From assembly GCF_006345805.1 (NCBI RefSeq), contig NC_043000.1, positions 111,104,001 through 111,168,000 of the forward strand: a stretch of 64,000 bases of DNA, read 5' to 3'. This DNA is from Octopus sinensis (lineage: Eukaryota). The notes beneath the pieces are model-generated. The model ran no database searches, was not told the origin of the DNA, and was given only the letters and a program-made list of their open reading frames with translations. Positions 7,520 through 29,937 of this stretch are shown one piece after another (position 1 is the stretch's first letter; each line of letters begins with the position of its first letter). The position numbers and the translations under genes were made by a program.

Positions 7520-7848
7520 ATGAAGCTGGGTTACTTTTTCAGTTCTCCTCATCGACATTTTGTTATCCTAATAGTGAATCTACTTGCATCAAGTTTAGTT
7601 TCTTCCGATGAAATTGTCGTTCAAGGAGTCGGTGCCAGTTTCCCAGCCGAAGTCTACGCACAATGGATTAACAATTACATGCCCACGAGAAGAGCTTTCA
7701 CCAACCTGGCAATATACTACAATGTAACGGGGAGTAGTAAAGGCCTGAAAGCCATCCAGCAGGATGAGTTTGTGGATTTTGCTGGCTCTGAAACATTGCT
7801 ACCAGCAAATGCAAGCAGCAACCTGAAAATGCTTCCAACTATGGCTGG
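7520..7848 (+). CDS. Coding exon 1 of 3 of a PstS-ectodomain receptor guanylyl-cyclase-like protein: signal peptide plus N-terminal part of the PstS/PBP2 phosphate-binding domain
   Basis: ATG at 7520, then a hydrophobic stretch (FVILIVNLLASSLVSS). GVGASFPAEVYAQW, GSSKG and VDFAGSE match PstS GAGATFPAPVYAKW, GSSGG and VDFGASD. GG|GTAAG donor at 7849 (phase 2) fits the acceptor at 14505. Confidence 0.92.
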
Positions 7849-8150
7849 GTAAGCTATGAATCTATTATCAATTCTGATCTGATTTCTGTACAGTTTCGTA
7901 CAAACATGCGTTCACGTTCCTTCTTTGACGTTTCACATTCTTCAGTTTTTATGGCGCAACTACAACCTCGACTTTCCGGATACTGGCGGTCAGGAACTTC
8001 TTATAATACGGATTAATTGACGAGTAGGTCAGCAGTTTTTCTCTGGGAGGGAGTTACTGGATTATACCGACTCTAGGACTTGACTCGTATTGAATTTCAA
8101 CGATTCTGGAGGCATGAAAGGCAAAGTTGACCTCGGAGGTTAACTTTTAG

Positions 8151-8357
8151 ATAAATAGATAGATAGATAGATAGATAGATAGACAGACAGACAGACAGAC
8201 AGACAGACAGACAGACAGACAGACAGACAGACAGACAGACAGACAGACAGACAGACAGACAGACAGATAGATAGATAGATAGATAGATAGATAGATAGAT
8301 AGATAGATAGATAGATAGATAGATAGATAGATAGATAGATAGATAGATAGATAGATA
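8151..8357. repeat. Compound (GATA)n(GACA)n(GATA)n microsatellite, representative of dozens of (AT)n, (AC)n, (AG)n, (GATA)n, (GTAT)n and (AAT)n tracts
   Basis: Read directly from the sequence. Confidence 0.95.
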
Positions 8358-11300
8358 AGAGAAGTGAGGTGAGAGAATAGATGTTTATTTCGTTTGTTTA
8401 CAGCTGTTTCGTGATTTAGTTATATGATAGATGTTACATTATATTGGACTCAGCTGTCGTAAACGACAGACCAGGTTTCCGTAATCTATTACTGAAATCC
8501 CAGTAGAGATGATTTATTTACAGTGAGCAAAAGTATGTACAGTGCTGCACTGTGTGTCACAGGTCAAATGTCGAAGTGATGGCAGAGCAACGTAAAGTTT
8601 CTTGCTCAAGAAAACAACCCACCGTCCGGTCTAGGAATCGAAACCAGGAAATTGCGATTGTATGTGCGCAATACCACTAGACCACGCGCCTACACACACA
8701 CACAGGTATGTGTGTGTATACCTGTATATGTTTATAAGTATGTGTGCGTGAATCATGAGCTCATGGAATATATAGCATACACACATACATACATATACAT
8801 ACACACACTCAGAAACATAAATAAACACACACATATATCCATGATGTATAGATGCATACATAGGAAGATAAATTAAATGAAATGCTTTGAATATTGATAA
8901 TGGATAATCGGTTAATCTACAATAGTATTTCGTTGCTAAAATAATTAGTATTATGCAAGTTTTGTTTTATGAGCAACACAAGTCATGATTTATTGTTTAT
9001 TCCATAAAACGCCTGAACGGTGGGTGAATACAAAACGTAGCCAGCTTTAAGCTGAAGAGCTTTCACAACACAAATACCACATTGAAAAGTAATAAAAAAA
9101 CATCATAAAACAATATGCGTGTGTGTATGTGTGTATGTGGTTGCATTTATGTTGGTACGTATGTATGTACTTATGTATGTATTACTTACGTATGTATGTA
9201 CTATGTATCTATGTATCTCGTAAGTATGTGTGCATGTATATATGTAATTGGTGACGAATCAACGATGTCACCGAAGCCCTACAATTAAATCGATTATAGG
9301 AGTTTCCCCCACCAGTATATTAGCAATTGAAAGGAAATACTATGCATCAGCTAAATTTCTAGGGTAAACTTCCTGGCTATGTTGCCCAGGTTCGATCTCG
9401 CTCTGCGGCACATTCAGACATTGAGCGTCCTTCACTACAATTTCAGGACAGCAAAAGCCTTGTGAGAGAAATATGGTTAATGGAAAATGCGTGCCAATTC
9501 ATTACATGGAACGGTTCTTGTGCTTGGGTGATAGCGGTTTTTAGATGATAGATTTTTTTGGTGTAATAACCCAGCTAAACACCACGAAAAGGTCCTTGGG
9601 AGACTTTAAAAAAGTACACTTTGTGGTATGCATTCAGGTCAGAGTTTTCCGACTGGGAGTAACTTTCCTTTTTTTCTCCCAGACCCCAACAAATATCAAA
9701 GCCACTTCCTTCTTTTTTTTCTCTATAAGCGATAAAAAATAAATTTAGATTCGTTTCCTTCCTGGTTGATCACCGGATTGTAAATGTGAGCTTTGAGCAA
9801 AAGATCATTCGCAAATCTCAGTTCCTAAATATTGCTTTAATGAAAGGAAAACGGGACGTCGTATGTGTGTGTAGAGGCATTATTTATGTCTGATGACATA
9901 CCGAAGAGTTAGAGTCGTGGCCTCGATACATCTTCCAGGTAAAACACCTCAAATGAAGCGAGAGAAACAAGAGATTAATCAATTGGACGGCGTGAAAGGT
10001 TACAACAGGTAGACAAATCTTTCAAAAGATGGTGGATAAAATGTAATCATCATCATCATCATCATCCGGTCATGCTTGTTGCACAGATTGCCGTAACTCA
10101 TTCTCTCCTGACTAAAGAACAAAATGAAAACGCAAAACTAATTAACACAAAACTAATTAACGCAAAAATAATTCACGCAAAAGTTGGTGCAGGCGTAGCT
10201 ATGCAGTAAGAAGTTTACTTCTCGGCCACGTGGTTTTGGGTTCAGTCCCACAGCTTGCTACGTTGGGCAAGTGTTTTTCTACGATAGCTTCGGGCCGACC
10301 CAAGCCGTGTTAGTGGATTTGCGAGACGGAAACTGAAGGAAGCTCGTTGTAGGCACGCATGTGTGTGTGTATCTGTGAGTGTGTGTGTGTGGGTGGGTGT
10401 GTGTGTGTCCACCACCACCACCACCACGGTTTGGTGCAAATGTGTCTATGTCCCAGTTACTTAGCGGTTCGGCAACAGAGGTCGATAGAATAAGTACCAG
10501 GCATTACAAAAAACATAATGATGACAAGTACTGCTGTCGATTCGTCCCTTCAAGGCGGTGCCCCATTATGGCCACAATCTAATGACTGAAACAAATAAAA
10601 GATATAATGGAAAAAGGAAAGAAGTCTACAGACATTTCGTGCGAAACCTTTATCGAGATGGAATCAGAAAGCATTTTCATTGTAAATCATTTTGAAGTGG
10701 GTTGCAGGGTCCCAAAGGAGCCGATACATCCCCCTTTGAGAAACGCTGTTCAAAATTTACGATTAAAATGCAAGGTTGGAAAGTAAATTCTGTTGTATAT
10801 TTTACGTGACCACTTTGGGAGTACTTTTTCAATACTTACCTTAAAATAAGCATTTTGAGGCACTGTGGGGTAACTAATGATGTGCACTACCGACTTCTGC
10901 AAGCCATAAGTGGGAGTTGTGTAGTAGCTGGAGACCAATCCACATGTCCACACCTGAAGATGTGCGGCTAAAAGGTTTACAAAAGTACTTCTTATTTTCT
11001 ACGCCAAATACAATCTTTTAGAAGGAATTAGTCTTATAATAACGTGTAGAGTTGATTTAATGTGGCGAGATTCAAGCTAAAATTCAACAGGGAAGGGCAA
11101 TGTCGGCGGATGAATCGATTCATGTATAAAGTTATTGATTGATTCATTAGCCAGCGTAGTGAGGCGTGTAAAGTGGTTAAATATGATGTCGCATGGTGTT
11201 CTCATGTGACACTCAGCTGAACAATCGTTAGTGATAATTCTGAACTGGGATCTGTTCAATAAAAGATGTATAAAACTGCATAATTTAAAATATTTTCTGA

Positions 11301-28964: not shown

Positions 28965-29495
28965 CACCTTAAAAGTTCATTATTTACATTATTCACATTT
29001 GACGGATATTTGTCCTCATCTTGTTTGTTGTTAACACGTTTCGGCTGATATATCCTCCAGCCATCATCAAATGTCTTGGGGAAATTTCGAACCAGGGTCC
29101 TCATTCCTAAGGTAATTTTCAATGTTGCTGTTGTTGTTGTTGTTGTTGTTATCATCATCATCATCATTATTATTATTATTATTATTATTATTATTCAGGT
29201 CACTGGAATCGAACTCGCCATATGCCCATGGGCATATGGCGTAGTGGTTAAGAGCGCGGGCTACTAACCCCAAGATTCCAAGTTCGATTCCAGGCAATGA
29301 CCTGAATAATAATAATAATAATAATAATAATAATAATCATAATAATAAAATACCTTAGGAATGAGAAGCCAGTTTGAAATTTCCCCAAGACACCTGATGA
29401 GTGCTGGAGGGTATATCAGCAGAAACATTGTGTTAACAACAAACAAGATGAGGGCAAATATCCATCAAATGTAAATAATGTAAATAATGTACACA
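28965..29495. repeat. Large foldback (Penelope-type arms, (AAT)n, central tRNA-like SINE head)
   Basis: 28965-29125 is the reverse complement of about 29345-29495; a perfect 26-bp palindrome lies at 29216-29241. Confidence 0.8.
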
Positions 29496-29631
29496 ATTCC
29501 TCATCTCTTAAATAAAGAACTGTACCTTAAAAGTTATTGCAGCAAAGTTGTATTGAAATATAGACAATTGTTAAAAGATTCCTTGTTTTCATTTTACTAA
29601 TAAATTAATTAACCAATTTATATATTTTCAG

Positions 29632-29937
29632 TCATCAAATACATGTTACTGGCTGATTTCGAGAACGAAATCAGCTGAAAAGACAGAAGAAGGAAACGTC
29701 AGTCCTGTTGTAACGGAAGATTGTAAAACACCCGTGAAAGATACCAAAGAAAATCAAGTGGAAAGAAAAGAAGAAATTCCTTTGAAAAATTCCCCTTTAC
29801 ACAAAGATTCCCAACTAGCTATACCTCTAGAACATAATTCCATCACTGCACCGTCTCTACAATTAAATGTACCACAGATCAGAAAAACTTCGCCGTTAAA
29901 CAAAACCAGCAACAAAATATTCCCCCTTGAACAATGA
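29632..29937 (+). CDS. Coding exon 3 of 3: end of the cyclase fold (SSNTCYWL) plus a low-complexity S/T/P/K/E-rich C-terminal tail, TGA stop
   Basis: TATTTTCAG| acceptor at 29631, phase 0 and in frame with track ORF 29734..29937. TCYWL matches the terminal TYWL strand of class III cyclases. Total CDS 3213 nt is divisible by 3. A small missed exon between exons 2 and 3 cannot be excluded. Confidence 0.8.
   Translation, partial: SSNTCYWLISRTKSAEKTEEGNVSPVVTEDCKTPVKDTKENQVERKEEIPLKNSPLHKDSQLAIPLEHNSITAPSLQLNVPQIRKTSPLNKTSNKIFPLEQ

Follow-up and report, generated by a model that had tools for sequence, protein, structure and literature searches.

The window, a 64,000-nucleotide stretch of the Octopus sinensis contig NC_043000.1, carries on its forward (+) strand a gene of three coding exons, for which our re-derivation from the window sequence agrees with the first-pass annotation: canonical GT-AG sites and matching phases (2, 1 and 0 for exons 1 to 3, with AG/GT flanks) join the exons into a 3213-nt open reading frame (ORF) of 1070 amino acids plus stop. 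Exon 1 (7520-7848, 329 nt; aa 1-109 and 2 nt of codon 110) contains the start ATG, a hydrophobic stretch resembling a signal peptide (aa ~14-28) and the N-terminal part of a domain resembling the phosphate-binding protein PstS, with the phosphate-ligand positions S40, F41, S72 and E91. Intron 1 (7849-14505; 6.66 kb, GT...AG) splits this domain and contains no long non-repetitive ORF. The giant exon 2 (14506-17083, 2578 nt; aa 110-969) is a single open reading frame covering the remainder of PstS, a transmembrane (TM) helix, a juxtamembrane region, a kinase-homology domain (KHD), a signalling helix and most of a cyclase-like domain. Intron 2 (17084-29631; 12.5 kb, GTAAGT...AG) starts with (TA)n/(CA)n microsatellites, and exon 3 (29632-29937, 306 nt; aa 970-1070 and stop TGA at 29935-29937) encodes CYWLISR (aa 974-980), the beta-strand that completes the cyclase fold, followed by a disordered tail.

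From end to end the protein matches an independent NCBI model, CAI9721055.1 ('guanylyl cyclase GC-E-like [Octopus vulgaris]'), with 100% identity; it differs at 4 residues from O. sinensis XP_029635017.1 and at 57 from O. bimaculoides XP_014783576.1, the ORF being 1070 aa long in all three Octopus species. All three exons align ungapped to O. bimaculoides at ~95% nucleotide identity (~85% for the introns) with AG/GT sites kept, including the exon 1 donor GT at 7849 and both the donor and the acceptor of intron 2. Junction 7848/14506 falls inside the PstS fold, where LPTMAG/AISIAYNIP aligns without gap to PstS FPTVIGGVVLAVNIP, and the first exon of the annelid Paralvinella ends at the corresponding point (PVLAG, aa 102). 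At junction 17083/29632 the conserved last strand (TYWLTGR in relatives) is joined to the rest of the cyclase fold, and Paralvinella has an intron at ~aa 970, a position common with octopus intron 2. Paralvinella (aa 153-970) and a second cephalopod-like contig (L002) each have an equivalent giant exon. Since all domains are represented in this one exon, the fusion is not a gene-model artefact. The gene is intact and under selective constraint: its dN/dS is 0.19 overall (P = 1e-20), and each folded domain is under purifying selection, the KHD and helix most strongly so. A tblastn search of the product against the window recovered the three exon pieces only and no paralog.

Domain architecture of the octopus protein

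Pfam searches returned the PstS, pseudokinase and cyclase matches that the first-pass annotation had expected: PBP_like_2 (aa 31-335, 4e-26), PK_Tyr_Ser-Thr (aa 502-737, 1.6e-32) and Guanylate_cyc (aa 815-966, 4e-10, 39.9 bits). Together with hydropathy and AF2 modelling, they establish the order proposed earlier, namely signal peptide, PstS, one TM segment, kinase homology, signalling helix, cyclase fold and disordered tail. It is virtually certain that the product is a type I membrane protein with this architecture and belongs to the family described below. An N-terminal hydrophobic signal-like segment is present, and the single TM helix (15362-15418; aa 396-414, KD 2.77) is followed by the basic stretch KLKLRK. 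In the AF2 model the TM segment lies within one unbroken helix (373-425), which starts as the final helix of the ectodomain and extends into the cytoplasm. The K/E/P/S/T-rich tail (29680-29934; aa 986-1070) has a pLDDT <50 for residues 983-1070 and a dN/dS of 0.32, which is not significantly <1 (P = 0.07).

The ectodomain (7607-15352; aa 30-392, coding parts 7607-7848 and 14506-15352 with intron 1 between) is of the PstS type and not a generic type II binding protein, as Pfam, PDB, structural and ligand-column comparisons all indicate. A PDB sequence search retrieved Yersinia and E. coli PstS (1e-33 to 1e-30), and bacterial PstS proteins are 33-36% identical over ~87% of the domain (280-324 bits). 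The best 48 Foldseek matches of the AF2 model (pLDDT 91.4) are all phosphate-binding proteins, with E. coli PstS at TMt 0.91 and rmsd 2.4 A. All eight phosphate-ligand positions are identical or conservatively replaced (PstS T10 to S40, F11 to F41, S38 to S72, D56 to E91, R135 to R170, S139 to S174, G140 to G175 and T141 to T176), and the same holds across four phyla. The D56 column is Asp in chiton, bivalves and gastropod and Glu in cephalopods; Glu is also found in Paralvinella, in which the cyclase is intact. D137, the single position that has been lost (S172 in octopus), does not belong to the ligand set, and the top Foldseek matches include phosphate-bound crystal structures of the E. coli mutants D137N, D137G and D137T. 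These two cephalopod changes in the pocket region, D56E and the loss of D137, could nevertheless alter affinity or specificity. The domain further carries the family-conserved Cys319 and Cys368 and five N-X-S/T sequons, and its dN/dS (0.24) is significantly below neutral. The label 'bacterial-type' given to it initially is appropriate for the fold. However, the domain is old in eukaryotes: the intron position is common to an annelid and a cephalopod, and the best non-animal relative is found in the ichthyosporean Chromosphaera.

The KHD (15587-16411; aa 471-745, delimited by Pfam and the NPR1 alignment) lacks a glycine-rich loop and has R491 at the VAIK Lys, H584-G585-N586 at HRD and D604-W605-E606 at DFG. 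It is therefore dead, as first annotated; however, this is not a peculiarity of the octopus protein but a state by which receptor guanylyl cyclases are defined throughout, NPR1 having HGNLKSSNC where octopus has HGNLHSSCC. Arg replaces the VAIK Lys family-wide (A4 consensus IGxRLL). No other part of the protein is as conserved: the KHD shows 88% identity to Argonauta, 55% to chiton and a dN/dS of 0.08 (binomial P = 6e-11). The signalling helix, or dimerisation coiled coil (16412-16546; aa 746-790, AF2 helix 747-784), aligns to the NPR1 linker helix, and its dN/dS is likewise 0.08, significantly below neutral.

The cyclase-homology domain (16547-29679; aa 791-985, coding parts 16547-17083 and 29632-29679) finds the GC-A intracellular domain as its best PDB match (6e-30) and retains the class III fold in the AF2 model (806-980, last strand 974-980). 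None of the seven key catalytic residues of NPR1 (D, E, D, R, C, N and R) is preserved, all being replaced, which bears out the earlier view that this cyclase is dead in octopus. The domain is only 17-27% identical outside cephalopods, and its dN/dS is 0.23 (P = 4e-4 against neutrality). Its rate of evolution is close to that of the ectodomain and little below that of the tail, which fits a structural role but also slow decay.

A receptor cyclase family in four protostome phyla

A search for the architecture in other animals, as the first-pass annotation had recommended, identified ~68 clusters at 50% identity combining PstS and KHD, from Mollusca, Annelida, Nemertea and Priapulida, all with members machine-named as generic cyclases. 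Named molluscan members come from Octopus (three species), Argonauta, Liolophura, Pecten, Saccostrea, Nucella, Haliotis (two paralogs), Mercenaria, Mya, Sinanodonta, Bulinus and Biomphalaria (a fragment in which only the kinase domain was detected), and the others from Tubulanus, Paralvinella, Owenia and Priapulus. In the literature searched we found no description of this architecture, in line with its presumed uncharacterised status. These proteins constitute a previously undescribed receptor guanylyl cyclase family, whose ectodomain is a PstS Venus-flytrap instead of the usual ANF type.

The family is split with respect to catalysis: 11 clusters have seven of seven residues intact and ~30 are degenerate. 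The annelids Paralvinella and Owenia and the priapulid Priapulus possess all seven, and Guanylate_cyc scores reach 221-222 bits in Priapulus and Owenia compared with 39.9 in octopus. Every named mollusc member scored has a degenerate cyclase. Thus, the loss of activity noted in octopus is lineage-specific and not family-wide. The intact clusters group together in a crude, midpoint-rooted NJ tree, and molluscs may also keep an intact paralog. A single word-indexed, non-exhaustive search, queried with the octopus protein, recovered no further protein from Octopus.

Proposed signalling and alternative readings

As annelid and priapulid members retain the seven catalytic residues, the ancestral output of the family was most likely cGMP, and conversion of extracellular phosphate binding into cGMP is the best reading of the family's ancestral role. 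Binding of inorganic phosphate would close the two PstS lobes; this movement would travel down the continuous helix of aa 373-425, which begins with the last PstS helix and crosses the membrane, and would reorient the KHD and the coiled-coil dimer, thereby setting cyclase activity. Annelids and priapulids would in this way read out extracellular phosphate as cGMP. The octopus protein would probably still bind phosphate and make no cGMP, acting as a non-enzymatic receptor whose output would be the ligand-dependent conformation of the conserved juxtamembrane/KHD/helix module. This module would recruit or release cytoplasmic partners, and the cyclase-like domain would be kept mainly as a dimerisation and structural end-piece. 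We moderately favour phosphate as the ligand, whereas the specific non-catalytic output is proposed tentatively. For the combined explanation, that is, architecture and family together with a phosphate ligand and a non-catalytic output, we estimate a probability of about 0.55 from sequence and predicted structure.

An unlikely alternative is that the protein forms heterodimers with an active ANF-type receptor cyclase through its signalling helix and cyclase-like domain and silences this partner, possibly in a phosphate-dependent manner. The well-conserved helix, aligned to the NPR1 dimerisation helix, and the cyclase fold retained under purifying selection are what such a role would need. Both subunits contribute necessary residues to every class III active site, so a dead subunit would silence its partner; lacking both half-sites, it could do only this and not tune activity. 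A single metal-Asp mutant of GC-A is reportedly dominant negative. However, receptor cyclase heterodimers across different ectodomains are not established, and divergence of the cyclase-like interface to 17-27% identity outside cephalopods would be odd for a surface fitting a conserved partner. With no paralog in the window and none recovered by the word-indexed search, the initial suggestion that the protein modulates a paralogous cyclase gains no support. It is also rather doubtful that the ectodomain has ceased to sense phosphate and instead recognises a different ligand, be it an oxyanion, a phosphorylated molecule or a protein, or that it has become a purely structural or dimerising module. 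Glu91 in place of the specificity residue Asp56, the loss of D137 and a higher dN/dS than that of the KHD would agree with such a change, as would ligand supply: bacterial PstS binds phosphate with sub-micromolar affinity and body fluids contain millimolar phosphate, so a classical site would be permanently saturated, and to act as a sensor the domain would have to face the outside medium or bind phosphate much more weakly. Against a change of ligand, the eight ligand positions are maintained or conservatively replaced in four phyla, D56E preserves the carboxylate and occurs in Paralvinella beside an intact cyclase, and the predicted fold can be overlaid on PstS in its phosphate-bound form at 2.4 A. 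Moreover, the closed PstS pocket wholly buries the anion and is too tight for organophosphates.

Phosphate scavenging or clearance, in which a membrane-tethered binder concentrates or internalizes phosphate following a logic like that of NPR-C and the intracellular part serves trafficking, seems quite improbable. PstS is ancestrally a transport component, catalytic output has been lost in this lineage and sorting motifs could sit in the disordered tail. However, the KHD and helix, dispensable for a tethered binder, are the most constrained regions, and NPR-C lost the intracellular domains that the octopus protein has kept. The dead cyclase could finally suggest a decaying gene that no longer functions, or an error of annotation or assembly, for instance a chimera of contaminant bacterial pstS and an animal cyclase. 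This has a negligible chance of being correct and is effectively refuted by the single 2578-nt exon joining the PstS C-lobe, TM, KHD, helix and cyclase fold, the spliceosomal intron inside the PstS domain at a position common to an annelid, the constraint on a full-length ORF in three Octopus species, the higher identity of exons than introns, and orthologs in four phyla. Membership of an undescribed family with a phosphate-binding-type outer part and a cyclase-type inner part makes the octopus receptor a candidate sensor of extracellular phosphate in animals, and one that can be tested.

Comparison with known systems

NPR-A/GC-A, GC-C and retinal GC are type I proteins with a single TM and the same module order as the octopus protein: a juxtamembrane region precedes the KHD, which carries the HGNL motif, and a coiled-coil signalling helix leads on to the class III cyclase fold. 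The alignment with NPR1 spans aa 395-965 (1e-32). However, receptor cyclases have an ectodomain of the type I ANF_receptor fold and the octopus protein one of the type II PstS fold; it also differs in its missing catalytic residues and its 2.6-kb giant exon, and its family in the Arg at the VAIK Lys. Within the receptor cyclase lineage, NPR-C resembles it in binding ligand (predicted for octopus) without producing cGMP. However, NPR-C lost its whole intracellular region, whereas in octopus KHD, helix and cyclase fold all persist under purifying selection. Pseudokinase receptors in general form a further class for comparison.

The first-pass annotation was right that characterized receptor cyclases use ectodomains other than PstS, but these are not only of the ANF type, since animal NIT-domain guanylyl cyclases have been described (PMC7400543; bioRxiv 10.1101/2023.08.02.551600). 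These enzymes, with a bacterial-type anion sensor, occur in several invertebrate phyla and were machine-annotated as ANP-receptor-like (Moroz et al. 2020, PMC7400543); Platynereis NIT-GC1/2 have been described and NIT-GC1 is experimentally active (bioRxiv 10.1101/2023.08.02.551600). As animal membrane cyclases with a bacterial small-anion sensing domain, they are the nearest conceptual precedent. However, their sensor is a four-helix bundle flanked by two TMs instead of a PstS Venus-flytrap with one TM, their presumed ligands are nitrate, nitrite or NO-derived instead of phosphate, and NIT-GC1 is active, which the octopus protein, to judge from its residues, cannot be.

With bacterial PstS of the PstSCAB system the octopus ectodomain shares fold and phosphate-ligand residues, and with Anaerolineae-type PstS, to which the 33-36% identity over ~87% of the domain refers, also the Cys pair and a C-terminal ...TCNG motif. 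Unlike bacterial PstS, it is encoded by a spliced animal gene, carries N-glycosylation sequons, is fused to a membrane anchor and signalling modules and has no PstCAB partner. In Pseudomonas aeruginosa, phosphate-loaded PstS is the ligand-recognition element of the chemoreceptor CtpL (PMC8050422); there, PstS is a separate docking protein and the output is chemotaxis, whereas in octopus PstS is fused in cis to the receptor. Fusion of PBP_like_2 to a class C 7TM receptor has been mentioned in passing for Spizellomyces SPPG_06488 (PMC3251606), and we found such fusions also in Plasmodiophora (P0075), Jimgerdemannia (P0019) and Physarum (P0023). Like the octopus protein, these fungal and protist proteins are eukaryotic cell-surface receptors with a PstS-like Venus-flytrap sensor; however, they come from organisms other than animals, and their transducer is a 7TM GPCR, whereas that of octopus consists of a KHD and a cyclase fold.

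Gene model and surroundings

The receptor gene occupies three exons on the forward strand (7520-7848, 14506-17083 and 29632-29937; 329, 2578 and 306 nt), which join in frame into 3213 nt, that is 1070 codons followed by TGA. The first-pass annotation had proposed this three-exon GT-AG model, and we reproduced its AG/GT borders, its frame and its 1070-aa length. Along its whole length, the product shows 100% identity to CAI9721055.1 ('guanylyl cyclase GC-E-like [Octopus vulgaris]'); over all 1070 aa, it differs at 4 residues from XP_029635017.1 (O. sinensis) and at 57 from XP_014783576.1 (O. 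bimaculoides). At the O. bimaculoides locus, the three exons align without gaps at ~95% identity and with identical splice dinucleotides, and the introns at ~85%.

Both splice junctions are backed by homology as well as by this conservation in O. bimaculoides. Junction 7848/14506 interrupts the PstS fold; across it, the spliced sequence and bacterial PstS align with no gap, and exon 1 of the ortholog in the annelid Paralvinella ends at this position too. At junction 17083/29632, the cyclase fold meets its conserved terminal strand (974-980 in the AF2 model), with CYWLISR in octopus corresponding to TYWLTGR in relatives, and the Paralvinella ortholog likewise has an intron at about aa 970. There is no indication of missed exons in the introns; the protein lacks no segment relative to PstS and NPR1, and nowhere in the introns does conservation between O. 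vulgaris and O. bimaculoides rise to the level of the exons. The most conserved intronic block in this comparison (25622-26399, intron 2; 89.8% over 781 nt, against ~85% for other intron sequence and 95% for exons) is possibly regulatory or due to chance.

Exon 2 (14506-17083, +) is a giant exon of ~860 codons that runs from the PstS C-lobe to the cyclase fold. Its equivalents lie at 8955-11534 of the Paralvinella contig (L001) and at 10001-12703 of a second, cephalopod-like contig (L002). Since the giant exon and the positions of the first and last introns are common to annelid and cephalopod, we consider the gene structure to be old. Receptor cyclase genes typically have many exons; an intron-poor receptor gene is unusual and may bear on how the fusion arose.

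The 64-kb window yielded no protein-coding gene besides the receptor gene; an Rfam scan of the window gave no match, and Pfam returned nothing significant for its other long ORFs. Two ORFs of ordinary composition (711-1238, +, and 44841-45305, -; for example ...LLYGSETWTLSKKLERRL...) look like C-terminal remnants of retroelement proteins, the sole Pfam match of the two being a weak, sub-threshold one to DUF6451 (E 0.0014) in ORF 44841-45305. The window is AT-rich and dense in (TA)n, (CA)n, (TATC)n-like and (AAT)n microsatellites, at 17095-17200 and in many more places (for example 3372-3767, 36459-36839, 41391-41810 and 59837-60244), which account for most of its long spurious ORFs; one such run begins 12 nt past the splice donor of exon 2.

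Ectodomain and intracellular domains

The ectodomain had been read as PstS, and this assignment is upheld by domain searches, structural modelling and the ligand residues. Pfam places PBP_like_2 at aa 31-335 (4e-26), and the top entries in a PDB sequence search are Yersinia and E. coli PstS (1e-33 to 1e-30). The family ectodomain profile matches thousands of bacterial entries named 'phosphate ABC transporter substrate-binding protein PstS' at 280-324 bits, bacterial PstS being 33-36% identical to the family ectodomain over ~87% of the domain. The AF2 model of the ectodomain (55 sequences; pLDDT 91.4, pTM 0.89) adopts the two-lobe, type II fold of PstS, and all of its 48 best PDB matches in Foldseek are phosphate-binding proteins (E. 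coli PstS: E 2.6e-31, TMt 0.91, rmsd 2.4 Å).

Ligand columns were read from the alignment to Yersinia PstS, the numbering of which we take to be that of E. coli. Six of the eight phosphate-ligand positions are identical in octopus (F11, S38, R135, S139, G140 and T141 of PstS are F41, S72, R170, S174, G175 and T176) and the other two are conservatively replaced (T10 by S40, D56 by E91). This pattern is kept across the family; at the D56 position, Asp is retained in chiton, bivalve and gastropod members. The sole pocket-region residue lost, in cephalopods alone, is D137, which in PstS forms a salt bridge with R135; the top structural matches to the octopus ectodomain include crystal structures of the E. 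coli mutants D137N, D137G and D137T with phosphate bound. A Cys pair (C319 and C368 in octopus) and a C-terminal ...TCNG motif are common to animal and bacterial sequences, which suggests that the domain derives from one particular PstS subfamily. Judged from alignment and model together, the octopus ectodomain is a real PstS with a phosphate-type pocket.

Hydropathy indicates a type I topology, with an N-terminal hydrophobic signal-like segment and one transmembrane (TM) segment (aa 396-414, KD 2.77) followed by KLKLRK. In the full-length AF2 model (pLDDT 76, with ectodomain and kinase-homology domain (KHD) confident), a continuous helix 373-425 leads from the last ectodomain helix across the membrane, and the juxtamembrane stretch 441-475 and the tail 983-1070 are disordered. 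The top PDB match to this model is the GC-A/NPR1 intracellular domain (E 6e-30), followed by PstS structures, and the sequence aligns to NPR1 from the TM segment to the end of the cyclase fold (aa 395-965, 1e-32). With the domains described below, every element of the architecture first proposed was recovered by Pfam, hydropathy or AF2.

The KHD (Pfam PK_Tyr_Ser-Thr, aa 502-737, 1.6e-32) has a kinase fold in AF2 and carries the loop HGNLHSSCC, which is HGNLKSSNC in NPR1. Its pseudokinase marks are R491 for the VAIK Lys, H584-G585-N586 for HRD, D604-W605-E606 for DFG and the absence of a Gly-rich loop. These substitutions bear out the earlier claim that the kinase is dead, but not its presentation as a special feature, a dead kinase being the normal state of all receptor cyclases. 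The VAIK position is Lys in NPR1 and Arg at the level of the family consensus, in members with degenerate and intact cyclases alike, which suggests a difference from natriuretic peptide receptors in how the KHD handles nucleotides. The signalling helix between KHD and cyclase, a long helix in AF2 (747-784), aligns with the NPR1 linker.

The last folded domain shows the cyclase-type beta-alpha-beta-beta-alpha-beta arrangement (806-980) in AF2, and Pfam Guanylate_cyc matches aa 815-966 at 4e-10 with merely 39.9 bits. All seven catalytic residues are lost (0/7: the two metal Asp, the guanine-specifying Glu and Cys, and Arg, Asn and Arg), in agreement with the first reading of a dead cyclase. Since the class III fold is retained and none of the catalytic residues is, the octopus protein is a receptor cyclase by descent and not an enzyme, and it is predicted to lack ligand-stimulated cGMP synthesis.

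The dN/dS ratio between O. vulgaris and O. bimaculoides (Nei-Gojobori; P from a binomial test against neutrality) is 0.19 for the whole protein (P 1e-20), 0.24 for PstS (P 9e-7), 0.08 for the KHD (P 6e-11), 0.08 for the signalling helix (P 5e-4), 0.23 for the pseudocyclase (P 4e-4) and 0.32 for the tail (P 0.07). Identity to Argonauta is 88% for the KHD, 82% for the helix and 62% for the pseudocyclase; to the chiton, the corresponding values are 55%, 67% and 27%, and the pseudocyclase is 17-22% identical to other taxa outside cephalopods. On these substitution patterns, the octopus gene is clearly functional, and in its intracellular part constraint is strongest on the modules that transmit the signal (KHD and helix), not on the former catalytic domain. 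A pseudogene was rejected on the dN/dS of 0.19 and on an intact ORF in Argonauta as well as in three Octopus species. A chimera or contamination was also rejected, since a single exon contains the fusion and a conserved spliceosomal intron splits the PstS domain.

Distribution and origin of the family

Family membership was established by a full-library HMM scan with the ectodomain profile (11,750 hits, domain combinations being assessed in the best 150) and by cluster look-ups. A word-indexed search of the annotated collection with the same profile was dominated by bacterial PstS and gave no animal taxonomy, and a word-indexed TM/juxtamembrane/KHD family profile matched just a Biomphalaria fragment and one unnamed fragment. 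Among the best 150 of the 11,750 hits, ~68 clusters (50% identity) combine a PstS-like domain with a KHD, and 43 of them have a detectable cyclase domain too. Members were found in cephalopods (three Octopus species and Argonauta), a chiton (Liolophura), gastropods (Haliotis with two paralogs, Nucella, Bulinus and a Biomphalaria fragment in which the kinase domain alone was detected), bivalves (Pecten, Saccostrea, Mercenaria, Mya and the freshwater Sinanodonta), a nemertean (Tubulanus), annelids (Paralvinella and Owenia) and a priapulid (Priapulus). The Owenia and Priapulus members are CAH1793096.1 and XP_014672517.1, the latter a model still to be completed at its 5' exon. A reading of the octopus protein as unique needs correction; the family spans Mollusca, Annelida, a nemertean and a priapulid. 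All named members are machine-named, for instance 'ANP receptor 2-like', 'retinal guanylyl cyclase 1-like' or 'gcy-5-like'.

The family is split by its cyclase domain. Within the best 150 of the 11,750 hits, the catalytic set is complete (7/7) in 11 clusters, among them Paralvinella, Owenia and Priapulus (Guanylate_cyc scores of 221-222 bits in the latter two), and ~30 are degenerate, among them those of all named mollusc members whose cyclase domain could be scored. Tubulanus is partly degenerate (3/7, 103 bits). A pseudocyclase peculiar to octopus was accordingly rejected. In a crude midpoint-rooted NJ tree, which is indicative only, intact members cluster together and degenerate members form two groups, one with the cephalopods, the chiton, Haliotis-1, Nucella, Pecten, the oysters and Tubulanus, the other with Haliotis-2, Sinanodonta, Mercenaria and Mya. 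The relative encoded on L002 (ENA ERZ21867824, ctg118603l, 10001-12703; protein P0004, with P0003 from a Logan assembly) is 55% identical to Octopus and 53% to Argonauta, and its cyclase is degenerate (1-2/7); its equal distance from the two octopods would fit either a decapodiform ortholog or an old paralog.

The top non-animal hit is an ichthyosporean protein of Chromosphaera perkinsii (P0025, EP01135_P002540) with four tandem PstS repeats and ephrin-receptor-like and TRP-like regions. The euglenozoan Entosiphon sulcatum has multi-repeat PstS-like proteins (P0027 and P0031), and fusions of a PstS-like domain to a class C 7TM region occur in Plasmodiophora (P0075, Plasmodiophora brassicae CEO97692.1), Physarum, Jimgerdemannia and Chrysophaeum; a chytrid PBP_like_2/7TM fusion is listed in passing in a 2012 paper (PMC3251606). 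These surface proteins of protists and fungi, whose PstS-like domains are close relatives of the animal ectodomain, are candidate eukaryotic phosphate receptors and appear to be uncharacterised. PstS-like domains in other eukaryotes, together with the shared intron, disfavour a recent bacterial transfer into molluscs. A further protein, P0020 (1710 aa; a 93-member cluster from Logan, JGI and ENA assemblies), has an N-terminal PstS-like domain, membrane segments and two class III cyclase domains without a KHD; it is an independent PstS-cyclase fusion of adenylyl-cyclase-like layout. Its source is probably a microbial eukaryote abundant in environmental assemblies.

Proposed mechanism and comparison with known systems

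The observed parts of a signalling mechanism are a phosphate-type pocket outside, a rigid helix across the membrane in AF2 and a receptor-cyclase transmission module inside, with a cyclase that is competent by its residues in some phyla and dead in octopus. In the family, phosphate binding would close the flytrap, and this closure would be relayed through helix 373-425 to the KHD and the coiled-coil dimer and set the activity of the cyclase, so that phosphate would be read out as cGMP. The octopus protein would still bind phosphate and would make no cGMP; its output would be the conformation of the juxtamembrane/KHD/helix module towards cytoplasmic partners, the cyclase-like domain serving as a structural, dimerising end-piece. 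We tentatively propose, with a probability of about 0.4, that PstS-type receptor guanylyl cyclases (GCs) are dedicated animal receptors for extracellular inorganic phosphate, present no later than in the last common ancestor of the four sampled protostome phyla. Phosphate occupancy would be converted directly into cGMP in annelids and priapulids; in molluscs and apparently nemerteans, the receptor would have been converted into a doubly pseudoenzymatic form, with kinase and cyclase both dead, that selection would have maintained since before the divergence of the mollusc classes and that would signal via the KHD.

The main rival explanation is that the octopus protein acts as a dominant-negative partner of active cyclases. 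It draws on the requirement of each class III active site for both subunits, since a subunit without both half-sites can merely silence its partner. The first-pass annotation had considered modulation of a paralogous cyclase, an idea in need of correction; the window offers no tandem paralog, as tblastn of the product yields exactly the three exon pieces. Affinity is a caveat for any sensor model. Bacterial PstS proteins bind with sub-micromolar affinities; body fluids would saturate a site of this kind, so the receptor would either face the outside medium or have a much lower affinity. The affinity of P. aeruginosa PstS is cited as 9 nM (PMC8050422).

The family bears on the unresolved question of how animals detect extracellular phosphate. 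The mammalian candidates (PiT transporters, CaSR and FGFR1) are indirect and disputed. Here, the best-understood phosphate-recognition module, with its ligand residues intact, is joined to a receptor cyclase chassis, and since this chassis is catalytically competent in annelids and a priapulid, 'phosphate in, cGMP out' is directly testable. Should the proposed reading be correct, the family would provide the first dedicated phosphate receptor known from any animal, and a rare receptor that outlived the loss of its sole enzymatic output. The mollusc branch, octopus included, raises the question of the role of a receptor in which both enzyme-like domains are dead, yet which is under purifying selection with the pseudokinase most conserved. 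The family architecture is obscured by the names 'ANP receptor-like', 'retinal guanylyl cyclase' and 'gcy-like', which at least 20 database entries now carry and which warrant revision.

In the openly available full-text literature, we found nothing linking PstS, PBP_like_2 or a phosphate-binding domain with an animal guanylyl cyclase; a study of the oyster kinome, which counts 23 receptor-cyclase kinases, nowhere mentions PBP or phosphate-binding (PMC4883820). The genes are already in databases, and their architecture, spread and catalytic split appear to be undescribed.

Bacterial PstS works with a PstCAB ABC transporter encoded close by, whereas the octopus PstS domain is fused in cis to TM, KHD and cyclase within one exon, and no other gene, PstCAB included, was detected in the 64-kb window. 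The octopus protein shares with classical receptor GCs the type I topology, the single TM segment, an HGNL-type KHD, the signalling helix and the class III fold. However, classical receptor GCs have an ANF_receptor ectodomain of type I periplasmic-binding fold, whereas the octopus protein gives no ANF_receptor match and has PBP_like_2/PstS instead; their catalytic set is present, as it is in Paralvinella, Owenia and Priapulus (7/7), in contrast to the 0/7 of octopus. By domain content, the whole family thus stands apart from classical receptor GCs in its ectodomain, and the octopus protein in enzymatic competence as well. NIT-domain GCs, described in 2020 (PMC7400543), are functional in Platynereis, where NIT-GC1 was assayed in cultured cells with a cGMP reporter (bioRxiv 10.1101/2023.08.02.551600). 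In these proteins, the NIT domain (PF08376) is flanked by two TM segments, whereas the octopus protein has a single TM segment and no NIT match in Pfam; as animal membrane cyclases with a bacterial-type anion sensor, they are the closest precedent, in logic only.
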